Positions 20,557 through 62,919 of a DNA stretch of 64,000 nucleotides are shown here, piece after piece. The stretch's first letter is position 1. Every line of letters starts with the position of its first letter. Where the stretch lies: NCBI GenBank assembly GCA_907165135.1, contig OU015566.1, positions 9,548,001 through 9,612,000 of the forward strand. The letters run 5' to 3'. The notes under the pieces were generated by a model. The model saw only the letters and a list, made by a program, of their open reading frames with translations, did not search any database and had not been told where the DNA came from. The stretch is from Oikopleura dioica. Lineage: Eukaryota > Animalia > Chordata. The position numbers and the translations under genes are program-made.

Positions 20557-21757
20557 TCAATTTATTTTTTATAATGGCTTAATCGGATATCAGAGCAGTA
20601 GAGTTCAATAGAGTTTGATAATTTGGGTTTTGTTGAATTTTTTCGGCAGTTTGGACAACTCTTTGGAGTCATTAGATCCAAACACTGGTGGCAGAATCGA
20701 TGGCCACAGGTAAGAGTACATTCGTATCGTTCTTCTTTGTCGTATTTTTCCCAGCAAGCACCGCACTGAAACTTTTGTTCGAACTCATCATTCGTAACAA
20801 TTTCTGAAAAAGAAGGTCACGTCGTTTTTGAGACTTCGCAACTTACTTATTCCGTCAACTTCCATCGCGGCCTCCTTGAATGCCTCTGTTGTAGCTTTTT
20901 TTATATTTCTCCCGAAAATTTGACAATGTCGACTTCAGGGTTCGGTAATTTGAGCTCACGCTAAAACTCAAGGAAACAAAGCTTGAGACTCACGTTTTTT
21001 AATTTGAGTTTTGAGAACTCAGAGATGAGAAATCAATTCTGGCGATCCATGAGCCAATCAAGGAAGCGCTCGCTTAATTTGAGTTTTGAAAACTCAAAAC
21101 TCTCAAATCTCTCAAAAACTCAAAACTCCCAAAACTCTCAAATCTTCTCAAAATGATTTCTCAAGTCACTTTGAGTTCTCAATTTGAGGAAATTTGAGCG
21201 TCTAGTCAAAATGAGTTTTAGCTTGAGCTCAAATTACCGAACCCTGGTCGACTTCCTCTTTCAATCGAGCTACCACGATTTGAGCTTGACGATGTCTTTC
21301 AACAGCATCCGCCTCAACCTTCTTCCACGATTCGAAATAGCTTCCTACCACTTTCTGGTATTCAAGACTATCTTTAAAAAGGATAAGAGTAAAATGCAAA
21401 ATAACATCTTAAAAGTATATCTTATCGCTTTCCTGAGGCGAGTTTTTTCTTTGCACCATCGCAGCATGTTCCCAAAAGAAAATCAGTAGCTGTCGCGTCG
21501 CAGCCACCGATTTCGCAGATGAATTTCGCTTCGCATTGATAGAAAGATGCTTGAACTCGACCATCATTTACATCATCCTGTTTACAAAGGTAGCAGAAGA
21601 CGTTCTCTTCAACGCGGATCATGATTTCCGTAAAGTAACCACTATAAATTTATCGTAAAATTACGATCGTTGATCGCTGTTTTTACCAGTTGAGACATCC
21701 TCGATAGTTGTCATCAGTTCCCACAAATCGAGCATAAATCCGTTGCATTTTGCTCAT
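20557..21757 (-). CDS. RING-HC finger protein with N-terminal Cys motifs and a central coiled coil
   Basis: CLNC...CYLC at the N-terminus and C-terminal CGACW...CGHRFCHQC...CPNCR (C3HC4). Contains a MITE and two apparent 1-nt homopolymer deletions. Confidence 0.7.
20936..21246. mobile_element. hAT-type MITE (311 bp) inside the RING gene
   Basis: 35-bp TIRs starting CAGGGTTCGGTAATTTGAGCTCA (1 mismatch); perfect 8-bp TSD GTCGACTT at 20928-20935 and 21247-21254; internal CTCAAAA/TTTGAG repeats. Confidence 0.92.
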
Positions 21758-23081: not shown

Positions 23082-23444
23082 GTTCAAAGTTTGCGAGTTT
23101 AAATCAGCCAACCGCCAATCCTATTGAGTAATGATAACAGATCGGTGAGCTCCAACGCTGACAATTGAGTTAAAAGAATCGGATCATCAGAAAATCCGAT
23201 GAGATAGGCATTCTCTTATTTTAGACCGGCAATGACCGTAGTCAAAATCCGCAGAACCGTAAATCCGGTGACCGGATAGTTCCACGCGCTTATCGTGCCC
23301 TAGATTGACACGGGATCAGAGAAGAACGTGCTCAGGATTCAATGAATAAACATTTTCTGACCTTGATAAGATAATTGCTTATTATGCAAAGTCTGGAATT
23401 CTCTACTATTGCGTGAAGCAGGGTCTTCGGAAGAATAGGTTTAA

Positions 23445-24198
23445 GGATATAAGCTATGAATTTGAACTTTCGTAGCGCCTAAATGCGAAGTAGGATCATT
23501 TTCACTTCAAAAGTAATCCTACCTAAAAATGGACGTAAAACTCAAATCTGGTATTTAAAAAAAAAATTTTATAGAAAATTTTCCTTTTAGAGCGTTTTGA
23601 AATCTTACGCTCTCGATTTCTCGAAATTTTTCCACTAAATCGGTCGAGTTTTTTCGATGAATAACTTGTCTTAACCCTTATCTACAAAATTGACGGATCA
23701 GTTTTCCCTAATTCCGACCGAAACCGATTTTAGAGCCATTTCCATGAGGCTTACCCAGCGCGTGAATAGTGTAAAAAGCGGCGCGATGGGCGCTCGCTCT
23801 CTCAACTCTTCTTTTCCGTGAGAGTGGCGCGGGTGCCCCGAGCGCTTTGATTGGTTGCACGCGAAAAAGCACAAAAAGAAGAAAAACTCGAGCAAGAAAG
23901 AGGAAAACGCTAGAATGAAAATTTGAGGGAGTTTTGAAATAAAAGCCCATCAATTTTCTAGCTTAACATCATCAAAATAAAAGACACGGTTTAGTTTTAG
24001 CGATTCAATGGAAAAAATTCGAGCAATCGAGAGCGTAAGATTTGAAATCGCTCTAGAGAGAAAATTTTCCATAAAATTTTTTTCAAAAACTCCAGATTTG
24101 AGTTCTACGTGCAATTTAAGGTAGGACTGCTTTTGAAATGAAAATGATCCTACGTCGCATTTAGGCGCTACGAAAGTTCAAATTCATAGCTTATATCC
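23445..24198. mobile_element. Non-autonomous foldback DNA transposon with long TIRs and TTAA flanks (Kolobok-like)
   Basis: About 190-bp imperfect TIRs (GGATATAAGCTATGAATTTGAACTTTCGTAGCGCCTAAATGCGA... and its inverse) with TTAA on both sides. GG...CC termini; no transposase. Confidence 0.85.
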
Positions 24199-25313
24199 TT
24201 AAGTCGGATTGAAATCTAATATCTTTTGAATGCGATCGGTCAAATCTTTCTTTGCAAAGTTCGGATTAGAACTAAATCAAGTGGATAGTTCCGAAATGCG
24301 GTTTCGCGTTCACATAGGTCACATTTCTCAAGTTCTAACGCGACCTCGCCCAGGTGGCTAATCATGTATTCTAGCGGCTTCACTCTGCGCTGTCATGTCA
24401 ACTGCAGAAACCGAAATAAGGTGAACAAATGCGTCTGCGTAAATGGCAACTGTAAATGGAGCTCGACATGTGGCATTTTGAATGGGAGAAGTAGAATTTC
24501 GCCGGAAAAGGAGACAGTTGATTCGATAAGGACCATAAAGATTCAAGGTATGGGGACATTGATTATTGCTTTAGAGACCCTAGCTGCACTCAATTTTGAT
24601 AGACTCACACGTCATTTCATTTTTAGACGGTACATTTATCAACTTGAGAGACTTCATCGACTACATCTCGACTTGGGTAGAGAAATAAATAAGAATAATG
24701 AAATCTCTTCTGTATAAACATGTATTGTTATTAGTTCCTGCCGTAAATAAATTCAATCATATCAAAGTTCAATTCACTACCATTTGTTGGATTTGTCAAC
24801 AGATCACAATCCAATTGTCTGGCACCAGAAAACCGAAATTATTTACGGATGCATGTCACATGCAGCATGTGACACCTTTTTTTAGGAGCCTTCTTTTCCT
24901 CCTTGTCAGTCGATATTTGACAAATACTACTGGATAATTACTGCATCTTCAAAATAAAGTTGCGATGGTTCAAGCAGGAATATTTGTATGTACCCAAACT
25001 TTGCAACCGGGAGAATTATTTTCACTTTGTTTTCAAACAAGTGTAAATTTATCCGAGGTAATGTGCGGTCAAATTCACTAGTTTCAAATTGCATTGAAAT
25101 TTTATTCGAAAGTGTCCATTTGCTTTTGATACAGAACTTGTTGGAGAGTAGTATAAATACAGTAGTGTCATCGGTAGTAGAGATACAGAGAGTGAAAATA
25201 TAAAAATAGGGTTGAACTGAGAATAAAAGAAAGCTACAAAATGTAGCTAAAATTGAGATGCGGAAATCGCGGCAGGTTAAAACAGGTCGATTTCCATTCG
25301 ATTACAAATTTTG

Positions 25314-46229: not shown

Positions 46230-47356
46230 CTCCAAACATTGTGGATCTTCAGCTGGTCTTCGCGAGTAAAAGCAAGACTTACGCAAGTGCGCTGAGAGTA
46301 ATTTGCTCCGTATCCTGATCCTCGAGTTTGGCTGCAGTAAGTCTCGCCTCGGTAGCTTCCTGTCGAATCTGACGTGCAGTTTTATTCAGATCATGCGCTT
46401 TCGCTTGTCGTTGATGTTGGTTCACCATTTTCGGCTCCATCACTCCTGATTTCGCGACAGCTAGAATGGAGGCTCATTATCTTTTCTTTTCAATTTCAAA
46501 CTTACATGTTTCATGACCTTGATTTCTGTTCAAGCGCTTGTTTCTGCCTTGATTCTTCCTCCGTTCGTCTCTGAAAATCGCGTCTTCCATTCGACCGATA
46601 CTTCTCATGACGAATTCTACCGCCTTGAGATTCACAGTACCGTCTCTCGTCATGTAGGACTTCATTTCGCAAACAGTTCCTAGAATTTCAATAAGAAAAG
46701 ATTCTCAAAAGATCAACTTACGTTTGTAGATTCCAACAAGTTTGTCGATCGCTCCCTCTCTGATCTCCCACGAGGGCAAGTGAGGCAAGAAATCGTTGCC
46801 AACGAAGAAACATAATAGAATCCAATCATCTATGATATTCTCCAAGTCCCAGGGAATAGGAATATTAAGAATTTGAAGCAGTTGGGCTATCCACTCGCGA
46901 ACTAGGGTCTGTTTAGCTGTTGAAAGAGGGGAAAGTGTAGTACCTGTTGCGATTCTGATGAAGATATAATTTCCCTTGGAGAAAACAGGCGGCTCTTTGT
47001 CTTCCGCTCCTTCTGGAAGACCTTGGCAGTCGATCAGCTCGTGGCTACATTGTCCACAGAGCGTACAGGGCTTCGGCTAAAGAGAGAGGTTAGTTTTTGA
47101 TGGATTTAGAGAACCTTACTTTTCCGTAAACAAACTCCTCTCTAACAATAGTGAAATTGGGCTCGTGCGTAGCCAAACCCAACATGATCAAATCAGCATC
47201 GGCGCCCCAAATACAGTGGTGCGTGTTGGGATCGTGGGTTGGCGTGTTACGCTGTTTTCGGATGTAGTCGATGATCTTGTGCTCTTCTTCGCCGGGAACA
47301 GAGGCGTCGGACAAGATCACATTCAACTCGTGCCAACCAGCCTCTTTATTCAGCAT
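46230..47356 (-). pseudogene. XRN2: Internal fragment of 5'-3' exoribonuclease 2, truncated at both ends
   Basis: [16 protein letters not shown]...[30 protein letters not shown] knuckle, DDWILLCFFVGNDFLPHLPSWEIREGAID. Introns retained; conserved PGEGEHK reads PGEEEHK; N- and C-terminal thirds absent. Confidence 0.85.
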
Positions 47357-47726
47357 TAAAAAGAGTGTCTAATGAGGACTCTTTCATGCTAGTTTTACCT
47401 TTCGGATTCGGGCCAGATAAATCGACTAGAAGTATGAATAAGGAAATTTGACGTAAAAAGAGTTGACTAAGATGTAGTATGAGTTGTTGGTCACATGGTA
47501 GCCGTAAGTTTTGTAGATGTTTTCTTAAGTGGATGATCTCATGTTTGGAACCAAATAAAGGATGATTATTCTTTGTTAACTAGATGGGATAAACTGGAGC
47601 TACTAAGACAACAGTAATCGTGATTTCTCGACAGGCAATCAGAAAATTTTCGAGAACTCGTTCTCCGGGGAGAATTATCTGAATCATTTTTGAACACGCG
47701 GTGCACCTACGCACCGCGCGGGGCTC

Positions 47727-47859: not shown

Positions 47860-50800
47860 GACATCGACTTTTTTGGCGAGCCCTACTTTAGAGACATACT
47901 GTATCTTTTTACCTCTTTTTTTTTCAATAATTAACCGTATTGAATTTTAGATTGAAATCGAGAGGTAGAAACTTTCCTCCCTAATCGCTCCTAGCACACT
48001 CGATCGAGTACCGATTCTTCTGCAACAAGTTCGGCTGGAAGAACGATCTTAAGGAGCTTCTCCGAGAAATCTACTCCTTCGACAAGCCCGAAGCTGTCAT
48101 GCCCATCACGCGATCAGGTAAATAAACATTCTGAAATATATTTTACTATAAAAAAATGATCAAAATTATTAAAAAAGTAACCCATATCTTTTAGGAGCTG
48201 GAGGAAATCTCGTGATTGTGGAGGATGAGTCTTCAACTCCCGATCAGAAAAGGTAAGATAAAATAGAACTCAACCCCGACTTATCAAACTTATTCAGCAC
48301 CCAGCCCTGCGTCGAGAACCAGGCACCGATTCAAGAGCCACCGACGCCCGTTGAAGGGCAAAAAAGGAAAGAAGGGGAAGAAAGGCAAGAAGGGCAAAAA
48401 AGGCAAGAAGGGGAAGAAAGGCAAGAAGGGCAAAAAAGGCAAGAAGGGGAAGAAAGGCAAGAAAAAGAAAGCCTCCCCAAGCCGCCAAGCCCCAAAGCCC
48501 CCCAAGCCGCCAAGCCCCAAGCCGCCAAGGAGGATATGCCGCCTCCTCGCAAGCGTCAGCGGCGAGGTGGATACAAGAGGGCCAGGTTAGTTTTTGAGAT
48601 TTTTTTTTTTGGGAAAGGGAGAAAGCCTCTCGCCTCATAAATAATGGGGATAAAAATGAACATTTTCCCTGTGTACCTGATCAAAATTGGGGTAAACGTC
48701 TCGATTTTTTTAAACGCTCGAGACAGGGTTATGATTTAGAGATTGTGAGTTTGGCAAGGGAAGAGTGAGGTAAGGCTCGGGGTTGTTACAGAGGTTATAA
48801 AGGGGAAAGAAGAGGGGTCATACGGAAACTTCTTAGTACGGACCTGGGAGTCTGACAGAGAACGGAACGGATCCGCTGATTTTCTCCATACTTACCTCTG
48901 TAACAACCTCGAGCCTTACCTCACTCTTCCCTTACCCAACTCACAATCTATAAAACTTAATCTCTAGTCATGTTCGCTGGTGAACCTGGAGACCTGAGGG
49001 TGGAAGGGGTCATACGGAAACTTCTTAGTACGGTCCTGGGAGACTGGCAGAGAACGGAACGGATCCGCCATTCCTCAGGTCTCCAGGCTCATGAGCAAGA
49101 GCACGATTAGAGGTTAAAACATAGTAACCCTGTCTCGAGCGTTTAAAATAATCGAGACGTTTACCACAATTTTGATCAGGTACACAGGACAGGGTCAAAA
49201 ATTATCCCTATTTTACTCAGGTACACAGGACAGGGTCTCAAATACAGGATTCTACATAGCTCAGGTTGCTGAGCTCAGTTAAGGTTAAACGTAGGACCTT
49301 GAGTCGAGTCAGAGGAAAGGAGGTGGAATCAAGGGAATATAGCAGAGGTAATAAAGAAAAAAAAAAGGAAGGGGTCATACGGAAACTTCTTAGTACGGTC
49401 CTGGGAGACTGACAGAGAACGGAACGGATCCGCCTTATTTTTCAATGTTTACCACTGCTAAATTCCCTTGATTCCACCTCCTTTCCCCTGACTCGACTCA
49501 AGGCCCTACGTTTAACCTTATCTGAGCTCGGCAACATTACCTGAGAAAACTTGAGAGTCAAGATACACTGATTCTCCACCATAAGGGTGATTTTCTGATA
49601 ATAGGACTGTAGGGTTGAAAGTTGTCTTGGTAAAAGACAACGGTTATAATTTTTATGTGTGAACTTGGTCGAAAAAAAACCCTGTGTTTAACCCTGAGTC
49701 TGACCTGAGTACCTGACTGAGTGGGAAGGGCTTTCTCCCGAAATTAATTACAGCGAAATTAATACAGCATAAATTTAGGGACCGTAAGTGTCTCACAAGA
49801 AAGGTGTTTGCGAGCGCGATGAAGTCGGAGGGCCAGTATAATCAGCGATTAATAAGAATCGTGCAAACGGCAAAAACATCAGCCAAATTTAAACGGGTGC
49901 CAACCATACAACAAGCTGATATCGACAAGCTCAACAGCCGCGAGAATCCGGTAATTTATAAAAAGAAAAAAGTTTTAAACGTTATTTTTTAGGTCAACAA
50001 AGAGATCCTTCGAGCATTGGGAGGATACGATGGGTGGAAGCTAGGACATGTATTGAAGGATCTCTACAAGCAACAGGCAAAAGGCAAAGAAAAACTCCTA
50101 CTCCCACATCCCGACTCCATAGCCAAGGAACAGGCGGAGAATTTGGAGCAACAGGAGATTGAAAATCTCACCGACGAGGAGATGGAGGAAGAGGAAAGTG
50201 TCTTCAAGTGTTATGATCACGATTCGTTCGAGGAGAGGGAGCGACGGATAAAAAAAGACAAGTTTGCGATCTCCAGAGTCGCCCTTCTACGTAAGTCAAA
50301 CATTTTCGTTTCATTCAATGAGATGTACTTTTAGGATTCGAGATTCCCACACTGCTGAAAAACGACAAGGACTTGCGCTACAGGTCACGGTACGTCTGTC
50401 TGTACTCATGGTGGAACGACTGGATAGAGGGGGTTGCGCCGTTCACAGATCTAGAGTGTGCCATATTCAGCGAGTTCAAGCGTACAAACTCGGCAGGCGG
50501 CAAGATGGCAAAAAAAACGGTGGATGCCCTCGACAAACTCTGGAAGGAGCGAGAAGAAAGACAACTCAGGCATCATCGTTTTAAAAAACATATGCATCTA
50601 TACCACCCGCATCTGACAAAGTCACGATACAGAGCAAAGAGAAACGCCCTCATCAATAGATTGTCTTTTGCAAAGGTGCTCACCCTGGACAGATTCATGT
50701 AAGTTTACTTTTTGAATTCTTATACTTATATTTCTCCTAGGAAACACAGCGTTCTCGTCGACCCGGCGGAAGATTTTGTAAAATTTAAAGACGAGGAGCA

Positions 50801-51054
50801 TTTCTCGAATGCGGTCATTGTTGCACTCTCGGATTGGAAGAAGTTTCAATTGAAGAAGACCGGCAGGGTCACATATGGGAGCGAGTACACTGCCAACGTA
50901 AGTTTAATATAAGCTTTATCCATCTAACTTTATTTTTAAGCCGGCCGCTGGCGAAAAAGTGGACGACTTTGCGGACGCCGTGTCGGATGATGACGACAAC
51001 CACTCGTGGACCACGGCAGAGTCAGACGAGGGGGAAGAGTCCGAAGAAATGTAA
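47860..51054 (+). CDS. Orphan multi-exon nuclear-type protein with charged repeats; contains the 1.19-kb structured intron
   Basis: Exons splice in frame with GT-AG: IDFFGEPYFRDIL|LKSR|AHSIEYRFFCNKFGWK...EGEERQ repeats...PPPRKRQRRGGYKRA|RDRKCL...SWWNDW...HFSNAV...EESEEM*. N-terminus not located. Confidence 0.7.
48353..48460 (+). repeat. Three copies of a 36-bp coding tandem repeat
   Basis: GAAGGGCAAAAAAGGCAAGAAGGGGAAGAAAGGCAA x3, encoding EGQKRQEGEERQ in the spliced frame. Confidence 0.9.
48586..49778 (+). repeat. 1193-nt intron built of nested inverted repeats with three copies of a 64-nt loop
   Basis: GT at 48586, AG at 49778; flanking exons join in frame. Direct repeats at 48813-48876, 49005-49068 and 49370-49433, each bracketed by a different inverted-repeat pair. 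Confidence 0.9.
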
Positions 51055-51538
51055 ACTGTCCTCTACTGCCCTCTACTGCCACCCTCTACTAGCACTGTAT
51101 AATATACTAAAAACAACTCATACGATCCTGTTTTTCCTTTGCATTTGATTATCTAAAGAGTCAGGCTCGAGCAATTATTCAAAACAACTTTATTCAAGGT
51201 AAATTTAAATTATTGTTCTATGCAGGCTTTTACTATAAATGCATGCAGAGGTCGCTTGTGTGATCGACTGCTGATATAATACGTGTAGGTTTTAAGAAAT
51301 GAGTTATATTCGAATTTAAACACAGTTGATATTCACGAGAAAAAACCGAATTTTGCAGGTAAAATTGTGACATTTTAAAGGAAGAAACACCCGAAGTGAC
51401 AATCAAAATATTCTTAATGATTGAGTTTCATTTTATCAAGAAGTAGGCAGATGCGATCAATACGACAGATAAAAAAACATATGTTTCATTTCAAAGTTCA
51501 ATTTTCAAGTAAACTTCGGCTTTGAAAGCTTAACCCAA

Positions 51539-51829
51539 ATGTCGTTTCATTTTGACTTTGTGATGAGGAAGGAGAAGCTGTCGACTTCACGGACAACGAC
51601 CACTTCAGCAACACGCTGGTGGCAGCGATCAACGACTACAAGGGCTTCATCTTGAAGAAGACAGGGGCTCTCCCCAATGGAAGCGAATACACACAAGAGG
51701 TATGACTTATTCTTAAAAATCAAACTACTTTTTCTTTAGCCCGGCCGGGAGGAGGATCGCCTCCAAGACTACGCCCAACTCGACGTGCCCGACGACTGGA
51801 CAGACGAAGAAGACAACGAGGAACCTTAG
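51539..51829 (+). pseudogene. Tandem paralog of the last two exons of the 47860-51054 gene
   Basis: DHFSNTLVAAINDYKGFILKKTGALPNGSEYTQE| aligns with EHFSNAVIVALSDWKKFQLKKTGRVTYGSEYTAN|, with the same intron position. The only nearby ATG is out of frame by 1 nt. Confidence 0.6.
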
Positions 51830-55612: not shown

Positions 55613-56160
55613 GTAATCCTTTTAACACCATTCTTATCTTATTGTAAATTTTATGCTCTTCGATTCCGACATATCCTGCACATTCCAATCCCACGTCATC
55701 TCTCTTCGCAAACACTTCCGCTACACGAAAGCCAGCGCGCGAAATCTTAGTTCTGTACATTTCCGCTACACGAAAGCCAGCCCGTGAAATCCTAGTTCTG
55801 TACATTTCCGCTCTTCTCAAATACGCTCAATAAATATCGAATGCATTCAACCAAAAATTTGGTCTTATAAGCAGCCAGAATTTCAGCAGAGGCATCCAGA
55901 TAAAAAAAATCAGCCAAAATTACTTGCATCAACCAAAAAATGGAAAAAGCGAATAAACTCGCAACCCAACTTCGAAAGCAGTTCAATAACTTGTCAACCA
56001 CAATGCTTATGACTGCATTGAAATACCAGGAGGAAGCAAATCATATCCCAGTTGAGCACGCAGATGAATTTACTGAGCTAACACGTAAGTAAAAAGTGAA
56101 AACATCGCTAATAGCTTTCCTGGAAAACTCGCTGACAGTCTCAACATTGACAACGAAGCC

Positions 56161-56802
56161 GTGGGCATCATTGAAAATCTTCTTCTCGCAGAAACAGACG
56201 ACGAGCTCTCTCTTCACTCATCCAGCGAAGAAAGCGACTCCGAAGAAAGCGACTCTGAAGAAAGCGAGCCCGAGTCGACCTGGACTCAAGGTCACATTGT
56301 TGCTGACAGCGGTGAGCAGTACGGTTTGGTCTGCGACGCTTCTACTCAAACAGCTGATTCTGGATATCTTTCCCTCATGGAAGACTACCCGATTGCCTCT
56401 CATGATCCCGTTTTCGACACAACTCCCGAAATCAGCCCCATTCAGCCAAGACTCATGAGACTCAACGCAACTTCAACAGATCCTACACCAATGCTGATCG
56501 ATATCCCTGATGATGTTTCCCTTGGAACGCTTTTCGAAGGCATGATTGAGCCAGAAAATCAAGACTATGTCACTCTTGAGGAGCTAGTTAATCAGCAATC
56601 TACAATGACCCCACCGAAAAGCCCAATGCTGATCGACATCCCTGATGGAATCTCTCCTCTGCAATCTGAAATGATGGATACTACAGCTTGTGTCACACCA
56701 CCAAGAAAAATCAACCGCAACAAAAAAGCACGAAAGCCACGATGCGCTCGACGAATCTTTCCAAGTAATATAACGCAAGCTTTCTTATCTAATTGCTTTT
56801 AG
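56161..56802 (+). CDS. Orphan acidic Ser/Asp/Glu-rich protein with a basic C-terminus
   Basis: 213-aa ORF with SEESD repeats, duplicated PMLIDIPD and RKINRNKKARKPR. True start not resolved. Confidence 0.55.
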   Translation: MGIIENLLLAETDDELSLHSSSEESDSEESDSEESEPESTWTQGHIVADSGEQYGLVCDASTQTADSGYLSLMEDYPIASHDPVFDTTPEISPIQPRLMRLNATSTDPTPMLIDIPDDVSLGTLFEGMIEPENQDYVTLEELVNQQSTMTPPKSPMLIDIPDGISPLQSEMMDTTACVTPPRKINRNKKARKPRCARRIFPSNITQAFLSNCF

Positions 56803-56971
56803 AAACTCCATACAAAAAGCAAGTTGAAACCGATTGAAGATTCTCCTTTTCTGCCTGAAACTCTTTTACTGTCTTGATTTAACCTGCATTTCTCGCTCTA
56901 TTAGACACAAATAAACACTGGTGAACTTTTTACTCGTTGAACTATGTCCTTCATCAGAATAAAACGCGCAG

Positions 56972-57343
56972 ATGATTGCAAAAGTTATGAGAAAATTCGA
57001 TGTTACTTTTGAGGGTGTTTCCCCGTTCCTTTTTATAGGAGAATTATTCTTGAGCGAGACGCCTTATCAGATTTTTTACGACCAAGACGGCAATCTAAAG
57101 AGCACTGGCTTTAGAAATCACATTGCACAAATATCAACAGGCTGTCCTTATTCAACAAAACAGGAATTTGAGAATCATTACAATCTTAGATTTATTGAAA
57201 TTGAGCATTATCGAAGTAAGTTGATAAGATTCAAGAATGAAGCGTTTTGGTCGAATAGAACTTGCTTTTATGAACAAAACGGCGATCGTTTTCTTGTGGT
57301 CTATCCCATTCTTTCTCTTGCTGAAAAACCTACATATGCTTGA
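56972..57343 (+). CDS. Hypothetical 123-aa protein directly upstream of pPolB
   Basis: Intronless ORF whose TGA overlaps the proposed pPolB ATG (ATGCTTGA). Confidence 0.5.
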   Translation: MIAKVMRKFDVTFEGVSPFLFIGELFLSETPYQIFYDQDGNLKSTGFRNHIAQISTGCPYSTKQEFENHYNLRFIEIEHYRSKLIRFKNEAFWSNRTCFYEQNGDRFLVVYPILSLAEKPTYA

Positions 57344-60300
57344 TAAACGTTTCGACAAAATATCTGATTTTGCTATTGAAATGCCCGACTTAAAGTTCTT
57401 TAATTATCACGGTGTTTTTTCACATGATAACTATCTATCCATCGCGAAAGAAATTCGTCGTGAAATTTCGATTTATGCAAGATCAAATCAGAACCAAGAA
57501 AAGAAAAGAATGCGCTTCCAACGAGTTGGTCGATTCCGTGTAAAGGATCCCATCAGTGAGCCTCTCAATCTCTTCCTCAAACATGATGAACCAACAAGGA
57601 TTTTCGTCATTTTCAATCATAAAGGTAGCTCTTTTCGTCCGTAAGAATTCTTTATTTTTTAAGTTATTGAATCCAATCTGTTTCGATGTGAAAATATCAA
57701 TTGCAACTTGTCTTTCACAAGAAAGTTGGAACTCGAGCGCCATGACTGTTCCAGAGCTCGTCAAATAGAACCAAGTCTCAAACCGTACGGTAAAAACATC
57801 AATCCCCTTGTCGACATGATCGAGCTAGGCGTTTTGGATCGTAAATATTCAAAATATCGAAAGACGTCATTTGGTATGTGCGTATTGAAACTAAAAAATT
57901 AAATGATTTCTAGTGAGCTTTGATATAGAAACTTACGAAAATCCGTTGAATGAAAAACGACAAGAAACCGAAATCCACTCGTCTCTCAAACTGCTGTCAA
58001 TTGGAATCGGGTCAAACTTTGGATACGAAAAATTCATAGCTCGCCAAGGAGACGATTCAGATCACGCTCACAACATGGTTGAAGAATTTGTCTTTGCTCT
58101 CGAAGAGCTCTCTCAATCACCAGAAACTGCTCTACCTCTGGATTTTGACGTTGCTCTTGAAAAGCTTAATGAGCTTATTCAAAACGGTGAGTTTAATTTT
58201 ATAAGCAAGTTTACATGACTTTATAGAGACAAGCATCAAGGAAAAAATGCGATTATCATCTTTGCGAAATCAGTTCAAACAGTACTGCGTCATGAACGTC
58301 TTCGGATTCAATTCGGCAAAGTTTGATTTGGTTGTCTTGGCACCTTATCTCATCCCATTACTCAAGGAAAGGTATCCAAAGTCTTTCAACGTAATTAAAA
58401 AGGGATCCTCCTTCTTTATCGTCTCAACAGAAAGATTTGTGTTCAAAGATGCCATGCTTTTCGGAGCACCGACAAGTTTGGCTGGCTATCTCAAACAGTC
58501 TGGAATCACAGAACAAAAATCAATCTGGCCATACGAGCTTTTTCATAGTGTCAATGATATTCGAAATTGTTTTCAGTTTCCTAATTACGAGAGTTTTTTT
58601 TCGAATCTCAAAAGTTCCAATGTTGATTACGATGATTATTTGACAGAAATGAACAAATTTGAAAGACTCAAAGCGCAAAATCCGCAAACAACAATGATGG
58701 ACTGGCTCAAGCACTACAATATGCTAGATGTCAACCCTTTCGCCAAGGCAATCGCGATTCAATTCGAAATCTTCCATGAAGCATTCGGAGTGGATCCATC
58801 CATGTGCAGTAGTCTACCGAAGTTTGCAATGATCTGCCTCTTTGATTTGTACTCAAAATCATCGCCATTGTCTTGTAAGTTGATAATATAGATTCTTTCC
58901 TCAGATTTTCAGTTTCTTTTGGTCCATCAAGCGCGGAAGAACATCAGTTGTTTCGTGACAATATTATGGGTGGACTCGTCAACGTATTTTCACGATACAC
59001 AGAGCTACGAGAAGATGTTTCTGCTCCTCACAATGCAAAATTTGCTCCGAACGGAGATAAATTTACGAAAATAATCTTTCTTGATTTCAATGCATTGTAT
59101 CTCTATGCTCAGAATCAAGAAATGCCGACAACACCTGGTAATTATTCTTACTCAATTTTATTTTAACTTATATAATAGGAATCCGCTGGATTCGTGATGG
59201 AAATCTGTTTCGAAAGCAGATCATGTCGAGTGGAAACAGTCTCGCTGCTCTTGAATGGCTCACTTTCATCGACGAATACAGCCCGTTGCTGATAACCAAT
59301 GATGGCAAACGCGTTCCACTAGAACATCAATACTACCGTGGCGAAAAACAACTTTTCGACTGGACGATCGACGGCTACGCTCTTGTTGATGGTACCGAGC
59401 TCTTCTTTGAGTTTCTTGGCTGCTACTACCACTCTTGCTGTCCGGAATGCAAGCCTGGACAGACAGATGAAAATTGGGAACAAAAGAAATCCTACCTTGA
59501 AAGTCGAGGACAGCTTATCTTCATTCATGAGTGCGAATGGAAAAGACTCTCTTATCGTCATTTCAAAAAACGATCTAAACATTGGGGACTGATGTTTCAG
59601 CGGCACAATGAAGAGGATCTTCTCGCTGAAATCAAGGATGACAATGTTTTTGGATTCATCGTCGCTGATATTCACTGTCCTGAAGAAATCGAGGCTAAAA
59701 TCAAGCATCTCAACTTCCCTCCAGTTATACAGCGTATGACTATAACTGAGGATTTGGTCTCTCCATACATGAAAGAGCGAGCAAATGCAGCTGGTAGAAA
59801 GATTGAGCAGAACACCGTCGTTCAAACCTTTAACGGCACTCAGCAGCTGATATTGACAAAAGTGGCAAAATTCTACATGGATCTTGGACTAAAAGTAAGA
59901 AATGTCTCCCGTTTTGTCCAGTATCGTGCTGATCGCTGTCTTGGGAACTTTTGCAATACCATTACTGAAGGACGGATAAAATCGCTTGAGGAGAAAAACA
60001 AGTCACTTGCCCTTGCTTTCAAAACCGTCGGCAATTGGTATGTTACAGCAGCTGATTTTCTAATAACTTTTTCTTTAGCGGCTACGGCAAGATGGGGGAG
60101 ATTGTGGATCGTCCAAGGGTCAATTTTTGCAATGAAGATCAACTTGCGAGAGCTGTTCAAAAACCAAACTTCAAGTTTACGGAGCCGCTCACGAGGGAAG
60201 ATGGAGATTACGAACTTTCACAAGTGACAGTAACACCTTCAAAAATCATGGACAACAAACCAATCGTTCTCGCCGTCGCGATTCTTCAGCAATCGAAATT

Positions 60301-60974
60301 GTTATTTCTACGATTCGTCTATGATTTTCTATTCAAGTACCTCGAGGAAGGAAGTTTCAAGCTCAATTATTGCGACACTGATTCATTAGCGATCTGTGAG
60401 TTGAATACTTTTTCAAAATTTACATATTTGATAGCAACGACGAGGACGGCTCCATCGGGCGAAACGCGCAAATCCAAAATTGCATCGACTTTCTTGCCAA
60501 TTGTGAAGCCGCATCTTCGAAAAGCCTTTTTACGAGAATGGCAGAACTGGTTTGTTTTAAAAGACACTCACCGTAATGAGAAAACTCCTGGTTTGATGAA
60601 AAGTATGAAACGCTCATTTCTTTAAAACTAACGTTTTTTAAGCGGAATGGGAAACAGACTGTGGTGCTCTTATAGCTCTTGGAAATAAACTCTACATCGG
60701 AATCGATCCTGAAACTGATGAAAAGAAGAGATCTACAAAAGGAATTCCTCACAATGTCGAAATCGAGTTCGAATCAATGCGAAAATGTTTGAAGGGCGAA
60801 GTTCTTGAAAACAATAATTTTGATCTCAAAACTCTGCGCCGTCAACCGTCAAATGGTTTAGTTTGCCGGACGAGTACTTCAAAGCGCCTGCTTAGTGACG
60901 TCTTTTTTAAGTTCTATGTTGAAGCCGATAAAATAACCTGTAAACCATTATCAAAAGATGGCAAGCTGCTTTGA
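57336..60974 (+). CDS. polB: Protein-primed family B DNA polymerase (Polinton/Maverick type), 9 exons, about 1106 aa
   Basis: Zn-finger CENINC..F...LERHDC; ExoI DIET, ExoII FNSAKFD, ExoIII YNMLDV; PolA DFNALY, PolB KTVGN|CGYGKM, PolC YCDTDS. Removing 8 GT-AG introns gives 3321 nt of uninterrupted frame. Confidence 0.93.
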
Positions 60975-61033
60975 AAACTGATCATGTGTGACGCCTCTGT
61001 ATAAAACTGAACTCTTTCTCAAAACTCAATAAA

Positions 61034-61579
61034 ATGCCTTTTAACCCAACTGAAAGATCTGAGCTTTTGAAACTTACGAATTTATTTGGAAGCGAGCAAC
61101 TCACTCTCGACGATGACGAGTATGCTTTCTTTGAGAGAATAGGAAATATGAGACAGCTGAGGAATTACTTGATCATCAATCCTCCAAAACCAAATCGGAT
61201 CGTCGAAACTGCTGTTTTGATTCTGCTCGTTGATGATCAATTTGCACTGACCGAAGTTTTAAACGCTCTCAACGAGTTTCTCAATCCTCCGTACCGGCTG
61301 CTCATTGACTTTTCCTTTTTACTTGAAAAACCAGATGCGATAGATGAAGAGAGTCGATTCCGATACTCTTGGGCTCAAATGAGTACCAGCTTACCTCTCG
61401 ACATCAATCTTATCAAAGATGACATATCTTTCGAAAAACTCTTGACAGAGCTTCCTTCAATGCCTGAAATTCCTGACATTGTTGCACGATCTCATTCCAA
61501 CCAGAGTCATTATAACGAGTCTGGATATCAGCTCCGAAAAATTCTAACCTGCAACATATTCATAACCAAATTTGAGTAG
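61034..61579 (+). CDS. Hypothetical 181-aa intronless protein of the element
   Basis: Clean ORF preceded by TATAAAA and followed by AATAAA. Confidence 0.65.
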   Translation: MPFNPTERSELLKLTNLFGSEQLTLDDDEYAFFERIGNMRQLRNYLIINPPKPNRIVETAVLILLVDDQFALTEVLNALNEFLNPPYRLLIDFSFLLEKPDAIDEESRFRYSWAQMSTSLPLDINLIKDDISFEKLLTELPSMPEIPDIVARSHSNQSHYNESGYQLRKILTCNIFITKFE

Positions 61580-61701
61580 AAATTTTATTTCTGAAAATAA
61601 CACCGAAATAAAGAAAAGAAATTTCAGAACCGCAGTAATTTGTAAGAGCAGAAAACACAAGCACAGAGCATGGTAATCGAGAGAGTCGGAATCAGGAGAT
61701 T

Positions 61702-61983
61702 TTAGTCGGAGTAGCTTGTCCAGTCCATGTTGTCGAGGACGAAGTCGTAGAAAGTAAGGTTATTCCGGATGTCAAATTCTGTCTGAGTTCTTTTTCCAAT
61801 GATGCAGACGCCAATTTCTCCGGCGATGAGATCCGGGAGGGCATTATCAAGTTCTTCCTTCTTGAAAAACTTTTTCAGTTTCATCAGCTCCCGTCGATTG
61901 TCAGAAGTTCCAGTGATCGTGACGAAAAATCCGTACTGTTTGGCAACTCGGACGGAAAAAGAAATAACTTGAAATTTGGTCAT
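61702..61983 (-). CDS. Hypothetical 93-aa protein of the element
   Basis: ATG-initiated ORF with a TATA-like sequence upstream on the minus strand; convergent with 61034-61579. Confidence 0.55.
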   Translation of the reverse strand: MTKFQVISFSVRVAKQYGFFVTITGTSDNRRELMKLKKFFKKEELDNALPDLIAGEIGVCIIGKRTQTEFDIRNNLTFYDFVLDNMDWTSYSD

Positions 61984-62337
61984 TTTCGTTTGTTTTTTCA
62001 GTTTTCTGAATTTTGATGAGTCTACTGAGATGGGTACCGCTTAAATATATTTCAATTCATGCTCTAGTAGATTTGACCTTTTACCCGTGAAATATCAATT
62101 AGCAATATCAAGATGTAAAAGAATCTACCGATTCTGAGAACCAGATGTAGATACGGCTATTATTGTTACACATGTCTTAGAAAGCAGATGCAACCATGCA
62201 GATAGCGGAAGCAGCGGCTGTGGGAACTCCAGATTTTAATCCGATTACTATCAGCCGGACGTACATTGGCGCCATCTTAGCGCTAGACTAAGTTCTCCAT
62301 ATTTAACTCCACCCAAAACACGAAACTCCATCAAATT

Positions 62338-62919
62338 ATGTCAAATCTAACAAACCAAAAGCCTCTTGTCGGCTTCAACACTCGAGCAAACGTCGTCTAT
62401 CGCAGCAAGAGTCCTTGGTCTCAGACCATCTACGCAGAACCTATCTACGAAGAACCTCCAAGCCCTATCTACGACCCAAACCATCCCGACTACGACGCTT
62501 CAGTCTACGACATGCACATTTCAGGAGATCTGACTTACAATCCTGTCAGCCCAGTCTACCAACCCGACGACGCTTCCTCTGCCAGTGACTTCTCCGACAG
62601 CGACTCCTCTGACAACGACTCTTCTGAGAGCGATTCTTCCGACAGCAACTCCTCCGACAGCGACTCCTCCGACAGCGATTCATCCGACGACGACTCCTCC
62701 GAAGACGATGTCATCACAATCTCAGACGACGATCACATTACAATCTCAGATGACGATGTCATCATGATTTCCGATGATTCAATCATTAGCGTCTCTGATG
62801 AGGAGCCAATGGAGATTGACGACGAGCCCGTGCAAGGCTGCGAAGAATGGGAAACAGCTCGGCAACGCTTCATCCAGCATCACATTGACATGGGCAACAT
62901 CCGAACAGAAACCGACTAA
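62338..62919 (+). CDS. Acidic disordered protein with DSDSS repeats and a tandem SUMO-interacting-motif array
   Basis: 193-aa ORF containing VITISDDD-HITISDDD-VIMISDDS-IISVSDEE; AATAAA downstream. Confidence 0.7.
   Translation: MSNLTNQKPLVGFNTRANVVYRSKSPWSQTIYAEPIYEEPPSPIYDPNHPDYDASVYDMHISGDLTYNPVSPVYQPDDASSASDFSDSDSSDNDSSESDSSDSNSSDSDSSDSDSSDDDSSEDDVITISDDDHITISDDDVIMISDDSIISVSDEEPMEIDDEPVQGCEEWETARQRFIQHHIDMGNIRTETD

Follow-up and report, generated by a model that had tools for sequence, protein, structure and literature searches.

Palindromes made by fold-back repair are described from yeast, Tetrahymena rDNA and mammalian amplicons. They have a fixed small centre, symmetric arms formed by reverse copying of neighbouring sequence, and nested rounds of growth, and they are known to arise by fold-back priming beside short inverted repeats (PMC7999016). 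Foldback-like transposons (Drosophila FB and Galileo; PMC4168063) and long-arm MITEs have long inverted arms and a short middle, are noncoding, occur in introns and vary in structure. Introners and transposon-derived introns (Amoebophrya, PMC7789003; Oikopleura transposon-insertion introns are listed in PMC3443670) are inverted-repeat introns in which pairing can join the splice sites, and Drosophila hairpin-RNA (endo-siRNA) loci and MITE-derived hairpin precursors carry long near-perfect inverted repeats in transcribed DNA. A 1.2-kb annotated intron of Oikopleura dioica is like each of these systems in the features named, its transcription being implied by the annotation. It consists almost throughout of nested inverted repeats, three of which have a common centre and unrelated arms, and the literature searched contains no account of a repeat of this kind in O. 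dioica.

The window, by which we mean the whole 64-kb stretch of DNA analysed, is part of chr1 of O. dioica (Okinawa), and all positions are given within it. The intron belongs to the public gene model g2569:

48536–48585, + strand: last 50 nt of the exon 5' of the intron in gene g2569, from an in-frame ATG to the donor; protein P0018 spans 48585/49779, and the frame was checked by hand
48586–49778, + strand: annotated intron of g2569, 1193 nt, GT..AG
49779–49950, + strand: exon 3' of the intron, from the public gene model

Both the model and its protein splice exactly at 48585/49779, and the status of this sequence as an intron is thus an annotated one, in agreement with the intron of about 1.19 kb proposed in an initial annotation. 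It is far longer than the next four introns of g2569, which were read by hand at 42–44 nt; the median intron in O. dioica is 49 nt (PMC8008620). Only about 70 nt of the intron lie outside its outermost stem, near the host intron size. Homology of the gene was sought with exon 4 singly, the spliced protein P0018 being that of the public model and not a joining of exons by us. Against 1.84 billion representatives exon 4 found its own annotated protein and one spurious repeat protein, with no homologue; Pfam and PDB searches gave no match, and the protein forms a singleton cluster. Judged by these searches the intron-bearing gene is an orphan without a family match.

The inverted repeats are nested as follows:

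48617–48627, + strand: left arm of the outermost 11-bp inverted repeat, GGGAGAAAGCC, 31 nt from the splice site
48668–48731, + strand: arm A of a 64-bp stem around hairpins 1 and 2, pairing with 49125–49188
48729–48960, + strand: hairpin 1, stem 48729–48808/48881–48960; private arms 48729–48788/48901–48960, inner arms 62%
48813–48876, + strand: core copy 1, 64 nt
48957–49119, + strand: hairpin 2, with a perfect 15 bp beside the core (48985–48999/49073–49087) and weaker outer arms (66%)
49005–49068, + strand: core copy 2, 98.5% identical to copy 3 over 68 nt including 2–4 flanking bases
49125–49188, + strand: arm A', the partner of A
49161–49242, + strand: tandem duplication, 41 nt, 83%; copy 1 is the end of A', and copy 2 is 86% complementary to A
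49258–49542, + strand: hairpin 3, stem 49258–49365/49435–49542; private arms about 49265–49342/49458–49535 (94%), inner arms 67%
49370–49433, + strand: core copy 3
49695–49716, + strand: weak inverted match to the end of A' (82%) and to the tandem copy (88%), bracketing hairpin 3
49729–49739, + strand: right arm of the outermost 11-bp inverted repeat, GGCTTTCTCCC, 39 nt from the splice site

The three core copies are 95–98% identical, with 61 of 64 columns invariant, which bears out the earlier description of a 64-nt loop present three times with 1–3 differences. A 28-mer from the core is found three times, against none expected from shuffles. All copies have one orientation, that of the gene, lie within 620 nt, and form the exact centre of their own palindromes. 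The core (64–68 nt) is itself an imperfect mini-hairpin with weak internal and end complementarity, and folded alone it does no better than shuffles on either strand. Its three variable sites all keep the predicted pairing, including one swap of A-U to U-A; the covariation count, from three sequences, is not significant (equalled in 162 of 500 shuffles). Core conservation exceeds that of the arms, and together with the pairing kept at variable sites this hints at constraint or at recent core-to-core copying.

All of the stem coordinates first reported hold, including those of the 64-bp stem round hairpins 1 and 2 and of the closing repeat 31 and 39 nt from the splice sites. Hairpin 1 is 90% complementary over its outer 60 nt, and hairpin 3 has an 87-bp core stem at 93%, or six mismatches. 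The 15-bp stem of hairpin 2 can be extended to about 48957–49119, at 80% in its inner part and 66% in its outer, and a TTAA is common to this hairpin and the end of hairpin 1. Arms A and A' pair at 62 of 64 bases (97%), gap-free and with two substitutions, and the second copy of the 41-nt tandem duplication is an older relative. The outermost repeat has GAAA directly outside both arms, and of 3000 shuffles 19 gave a match of that length between the outer flanks. RNA folding, which the initial annotation had proposed, gives three strong hairpins 10–17 standard deviations below dinucleotide shuffles (z = -14.6, -10.1 and -16.9 for hairpins 1, 2 and 3).

In all three hairpins the left and right arms are nearly equal in length. 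These arms differ through substitutions alone, the outer ones lacking indels, and on neither strand do the mismatches favour G:U-compatible changes. Identity is 97% for A/A', 90% for hairpin 1 and 66–80% for the hairpin 2 arms, and within hairpins 1 and 3 it is 62–67% for the inner arms versus 90–94% for the outer. Compared hairpin with hairpin, including 1 with 3, the outer arms show no similarity above shuffles, and the description of the stems as unrelated is therefore right for them. It needs one correction, in that hairpins 1 and 3 have in common, besides the core, a 14-nt motif and its 9-nt complement, which lie about 10–13 nt either side of the core.

Searches for further copies were negative within their scope. 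The core does not recur in the 64-kb window, other introns included, by a search allowing three mismatches or by an nhmmer profile, and searches with an exact 24-mer or 21-mer found it in no viral, metagenome or prokaryote collection; O. dioica DNA is scarce or absent in these, so that a negative result there weighs little. The intron matches no plasmid sequence. No arm has a homologue in the window, including its pPolB region, and the search for stem-arm targets suggested earlier thus came out empty over these 64 kb. A protein search with the open reading frame of hairpin 1 and exact look-ups of 18 small open reading frames returned nothing. Known RNA families (miRNA, snoRNA, ribozymes) were rejected: Rfam scans, run at the gathering score and then with E allowed up to 10, returned nothing beyond hits below threshold that have a generic hairpin shape, one of them scoring 48 bits where the gathering score is 85.

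The array is real and odd in shape, and looks like a local pile-up of palindromic repeat DNA. We tentatively prefer, at a little under an even chance, that a short ancestral intron was swollen by palindromes grown in situ, a small local repeat being the centre round which fold-back repair worked. The roughly 70 nt outside the outermost inverted repeat would be the remnant of that intron. We infer a break beside the unit, or beside an existing hairpin, followed by resection, after which the 3' end would snap back on short internal complementarity and repair synthesis would copy the opposite flank, leaving an inverted duplicate of the sequence adjoining the unit. The arms would be private and symmetric because the sequence copied is whatever adjoined the unit. 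The unit itself may have been dispersed across a few hundred bases, through templated repair or by movement over a short range, with the enclosing stems added in later rounds, and the palindromic DNA would be tolerated because it is intronic.

Several observations favour this growth in place. Central cores and near-equal arms are the automatic outcome of fold-back copying, and the symmetric inverted duplications have a short spacer with a short inverted repeat, the 9-bp motif beside the core in hairpins 1 and 3. The outer arms are unrelated between hairpins and unique in the window, and the core copies lie together in one orientation with none elsewhere in it, which favours a local origin. In the observed gradient of arm identity the outer layers tend to be better matched, and arm A', which is 97% complementary to A, lies beside an 83–86% related tandem remnant, the expected trace of a re-copied arm joined to an older one. 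The substitution-only differences without G:U bias are as for neutral decay. Against fold-back growth, hairpin 2 opposes the gradient, being better matched inside than outside, and the weak end complementarity of the core, with a fold no better than shuffles, would make it a poor fold-back seed alone; the better-conserved cores and their kept pairing count against a purely neutral fold-back origin. The locus is single, with neither an empty site nor a polymorphism seen, and the succession of steps therefore has to be read from identities at few sites. Self-folding of the pre-mRNA would bring the splice sites to about host-intron distance. The proposal that the fold shrinks the intron to host size is in keeping with the short sequence left outside the stems, but there is no sign of selection for it, and the mismatches have no G:U bias. 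No function is needed, and none is shown.

A possible though on the whole unlikely alternative is that the hairpins are copies of a dispersed non-autonomous foldback or MITE-like family with a conserved centre, with several subfamilies in one intron or a core that inserts at palindrome tips. The 14-nt motif and its complement in hairpins 1 and 3 are placed like the short terminal repeats of a unit of about 115 nt. Hairpins 1 and 2 join at their common TTAA, and the GAAA directly flanks the outermost inverted repeat. The TTAA or TTAT found where hairpins 1 and 2 end, and the GAAA, could be target duplications, each amounting to about one independent observation; for the TTAA this is because the far end of each hairpin follows from symmetry. 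Elsewhere in the window are a TTAA-flanked long-arm element (23441–24202) and a MITE with an 8-bp duplication (20936–21246). Such elements thus live in the O. dioica genome, and 44% of the repeats of this assembly are unclassified (PMC8008620), which also counts for a family of this kind. Inverted-repeat transposons, however, conserve their ends, as in Galileo (PMC4168063), and here the ends are private. Terminal inverted repeats common to the copies, by which TIR transposons and MITEs are recognised, are not found in the array, its copies having in common only the centre and, in two of them, the 14-nt inner motif. The lack of a further core copy in the window also speaks against a dispersed family, and its absence from the metagenome, viral and prokaryote collections does so with little weight.

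It is improbable that the array is a functional hairpin-RNA cassette, in which stems of 45–108 bp in a transcribed intron would be diced against arm-homologous loci and the constant centre would be a processing or scaffold element. The long inverted repeats do give strong stems, very stable on the sense strand, their transcription being implied only through the annotated intron; all cores are in gene orientation, and the pairing kept at the three variable core sites would fit such a role. The arms, however, have no match in the window, pPolB region included, their mismatches are not skewed in a way that would keep the RNA paired, and the Rfam matches were sub-threshold and generic. The core folds no better than shuffles, its covariation is not significant, and a DNA-level quasi-palindrome template switch would yield the same A-U to U-A swap. 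Slightly more doubtful again is that the core is a dispersed element turning its landing flank into a private inverted duplicate, a maker of hairpins with constant centre and variable arms. If that were true, arbitrary host or invader sequence would become long dsRNA upon transcription and could feed RNA silencing.

The initial annotation had asked whether the loop lies in Polinton copies, and it is very unlikely that the array is a cis element (a terminal, replication or packaging structure) of a neighbouring Polinton/Maverick-like element. A pPolB-like region does lie 6–13 kb downstream of the array, and the host genes stop at about 47.4 kb, which in principle leaves room for an element beginning near 47.5 kb. 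The relatives of this region, at 40–47% identity, pass Pfam PF03175, the window's own open reading frame pieces (55.9–62 kb) being without a Pfam match, and an rve integrase is found on the contig of one relative; the signal of a protein-primed family B polymerase belongs to the region at 55.9–62 kb and not to the intron. Homology to the relative begins only at about 55.9 kb, 6 kb downstream, and the intron sits in a spliced orphan gene with host-type introns. None of 30 open reading frames of 49.7–64 kb matched a capsid, ATPase, protease or integrase in Pfam, the region has no inverted partner in the window (the far end is outside it), and the relatives' contigs contain nothing that matches the intron. 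The sole virus-like signal is the pPolB-like region, and nothing places the hairpins inside a Polinton.

Least probable of all is an assembly or sequencing artefact from fold-back chimeric Nanopore reads with a constant linker, for although the assembly was made with Canu on Nanopore reads and polished with Racon and Pilon (PMC8008620), and a constant centre with inverted arms is the shape of a read passing a linker into the complementary strand, the arms differ by 3–10% through substitutions only and the outer ones are free of indels (an artefact is expected to be identical after polishing or indel-rich before), they are 45–108 nt long and form three nested layers, which does not resemble fold-backs of read length, plasmid and prokaryote sequences contain no match to the core, and the gene model splices cleanly round the array.

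If the shared centre is unique to this locus, the array would preserve, in an animal genome that is very compact, a natural record of how palindromes grow on a small scale, and would show an organism with 45-nt introns tolerating a kilobase insert by self-folding. If the centre is instead a dispersed sequence that has new arms wherever it occurs, it would define a repeat class built opposite to ordinary inverted-repeat transposons and a possible source of hairpin RNA. Break-prone palindromes bear in addition on intron turnover and genome scrambling in O. dioica.

Set against the known systems, the locus departs from each in a different way. At endo-siRNA loci the arms match target genes, small RNAs are documented and there is no shared centre, whereas this array has one and its arms match nothing else in the window. 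An introner makes up an entire intron and recurs in many genes, its repeats lying at the intron borders; here there is one intron, its repeats lie 31 and 39 nt inside the borders, and its core is in no other intron of the window. FB, Galileo and MITEs need conserved arm ends for movement, while here the ends are private and the middle alone is shared. Known fold-back palindromes extend over kilobases to megabases and come from experiments or tumours, whereas these have arms of 45–108 nt, are fixed in a germline intron and use one centre three times. Fold-back palindromes and foldback transposons are already known; what appears to be new in this array is the same centre occurring three times, each time with private arms.

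The array of nested inverted repeats occupies the annotated intron 48586-49778 of gene g2569; the likeliest reading is that it consists of inert palindromic repeat DNA. The intron proposed in the initial annotation agrees with the public RNA-seq-guided gene model, which splices at 48585|49779, the 591-aa product (CAG5105918.1) reading directly across this junction. The next four introns of g2569, read by hand, are 42-44 nt long, and the median intron of the species is 49 nt (PMC8008620). An in-frame ATG lies shortly 3' of the acceptor, so the array may instead separate two distinct genes. g2569 is an orphan: its protein forms a singleton cluster and has no match in Pfam or PDB, and the largest exon, searched alone against 1.84 billion representatives, matches only its own protein. 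The exon upstream of the intron (48400-48535) contains five tandem copies of a 9-nt repeat, along with a repeat rich in proline and lysine, and this low-complexity N-terminal part is open in three frames. A C-terminal module is present twice (50742-51054 and 51454-51826; 36% protein identity), reflecting internal duplication. Directly upstream of g2569, at 46708-47368 on the reverse strand, is an XRN-type exonuclease gene (annotated 301 aa, XRN_N and XRN_M) that may be a truncated paralogue.

The components of the array are as follows.

48813-48876, forward strand: core copy 1, 64-nt unit
49005-49068, forward strand: core copy 2, 64-nt unit
49370-49433, forward strand: core copy 3, 64-nt unit
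48729-48960: hairpin 1, with its own arms and the core at its centre
~48957-49119: hairpin 2, with a perfect 15-bp stem adjoining the core
49258-49542: hairpin 3, with an 87-bp core stem containing 6 mismatches
48668-48731 with 49125-49188: enclosing stem A/A', 64 bp (62/64 paired), holding hairpins 1 and 2

The array is a genuine feature with solid statistical support, and its form is unusual. Repeat positions, pairing counts and shuffle tests show that the copies, stems, enclosing and closing pairs were accurately described at the outset, and the stems are unrelated, as stated there: the outer arms of different hairpins have no similarity beyond that of shuffles. The three cores are invariant at 61 of 64 columns, and a core 28-mer occurs three times in the window and never in shuffles. 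Hairpin 3 is bracketed by a weak third inverted match. The outermost closing pair, a perfect 11 bp, leaves 31 and 39 nt to the splice sites; in 19 of 3000 shuffles the two outer flanks shared a match this long.

We tentatively favor an origin in which a short ancestral intron was swollen by rounds of fold-back around a small repeat that was itself copied locally. Every core sits precisely at the midpoint between two equally long arms, the three copies are clustered in 620 nt, all in the same orientation and with none elsewhere in the window, and the better match tends to the outer layers: A/A' are 97% matched versus 90% and 66-80% for the enclosed hairpins, and within hairpins 1 and 3 the inner arm parts match at 62-67% versus 90-94% for the outer parts. 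These features argue that the palindromes grew in place and did not arrive as three separate insertions. Arm A' is followed by a 41-nt tandem duplication whose second copy is 83% identical to the first and 86% complementary to arm A (A and A' being 97%); this second copy is related to arm A' and older than it, and such a remnant is also counted toward growth in place. Fold-back priming is an established route to palindromes, in which the centre is fixed and the arms are neighbouring sequence (PMC7999016). In this mechanism a break adjoining a short inverted repeat undergoes resection, the 3' end folds back, and synthesis copies the opposite flank; long palindromes are break-prone in their turn, and this would set off further rounds. 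The weak points of the fold-back reading are that there is one locus with no empty allele seen, that hairpin 2 goes against the outer-better gradient, that the core is poorly suited to seeding snap-back, and that conservation is higher in the cores than in the arms.

A somewhat less likely alternative is that the hairpins belong to a dispersed family, of foldback or MITE-like type, in which the centre is conserved. The points in its favor are thin: an inner motif common to hairpins 1 and 3 (14 nt with a 9-nt complement, ~10-13 nt either side of the core), one TTAA that hairpins 1 and 2 share where they meet, GAAA immediately flanking the outermost repeat, and the presence of further small inverted-repeat elements elsewhere in the window. 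Neither the core nor the arms have further copies within the 64 kb, and searches of external collections with the core all came back empty; because O. dioica DNA is scarce or missing in those collections, these blanks say little.

The window comes from the Okinawa strain of O. dioica (assembly GCA_907165135.1, chromosome record OU015566.1, about 9,548,001-9,612,000); a locus taken from this record shows 100% identity to window 37479-61829, and the species is named in the protein record and in a paper citing the accession. Most of the window consists of host genes (tRNA, EIPR1-like, calpain, EMP70, sugar-transporter and XRN-like). A 311-bp element at 20936-21246 with 35-bp terminal inverted repeats (97%) and a flanking 8-bp direct repeat, GTCGACTT, resembles a small MITE of hAT type. 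The inverted-repeat element at 23441-24202 has 202-nt arms (89%) and a 358-nt middle, and because TTAA ends both arms a TTAA-targeting family may be present in the O. dioica genome. The 301-nt inverted repeat 14133-14433/18294-18594 (73%, 3.9 kb apart) may be an inverted partial gene duplicate, since a calpain-domain ORF overlaps one of its arms.

In computed RNA folding, which the initial annotation had named as a check, hairpins 1, 2 and 3 are 14.6, 10.1 and 16.9 sd below dinucleotide shuffles, and the whole intron adopts a single nested structure; the core folded alone is no better than shuffles. The array has the right shape for a hairpin-RNA cassette, but no target for the arms was found in the window and we regard this as improbable. 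Predicted pairing is maintained at all three variable core sites, with one A-U pair exchanged for U-A; based on three sequences this amounts to no more than a hint, and the exchange would equally result from a quasi-palindrome template switch in the DNA. On neither strand are the arm mismatches biased toward preserving RNA pairing. The array belongs to no known RNA family, no Rfam model having matched at its gathering score.

A role as a cis element of an element bearing a protein-primed family B polymerase (pPolB) is very improbable. The region in question is:

55904-62040, continuing to 64000, forward strand: homologous to pPolB genes

Its pieces themselves do not match Pfam, but relatives at 40-47% identity pass PF03175, and the contig of one also carries an rve integrase. 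Homology to that contig is collinear from ~55.9 kb to the window end, and ORFs on the minus strand at 63.0-64.0 kb share 59-74% identity with the relative. The polymerase frame is in about eleven pieces; as the public model (1153 aa) treats the gaps as introns and the relative's frame is similarly split, introns are as likely as damage. Nothing in this region matched a capsid, ATPase or protease. A short contig from another run (L003; Logan SRR23998815) has 83% DNA identity to 58825-60162, indicating a close relative of the element in another sample or lineage. Just 3' of the polymerase-like region, at 62556-62720, a 15-nt tandem repeat (at least 8 units) lies in an ORF and codes for a stretch rich in serine and aspartate. 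The suggestion that the array lies in a Polinton is unsupported, since between 47.5 and 55.9 kb the scanned ORFs have no family match, the region has no inverted partner within the window, and the intron does not match the contigs of pPolB relatives; nothing ties this interval to a virus-like element, whose far end would fall outside the window.

Least probable is an assembly artefact: the assembly is Nanopore-based and Illumina-polished (PMC8008620), and a read crossing a linker into the other strand has just this form, a constant centre between inverted arms. Against this, the 3-10% difference between outer arms consists entirely of substitutions and includes no indels, the arms are short and form three nested levels, and no plasmid or prokaryote match was obtained for the core.

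Should the core prove dispersed, there is a modest chance that the array is something more interesting. Ordinary inverted-repeat transposon families, whose conserved part is the ends (PMC4168063), are ruled out because the ends of these hairpins are private; here it is the centre that is common. The array is thus a variant within known kinds, namely fold-back palindromes and foldback-type repeats, although the variant itself is new.
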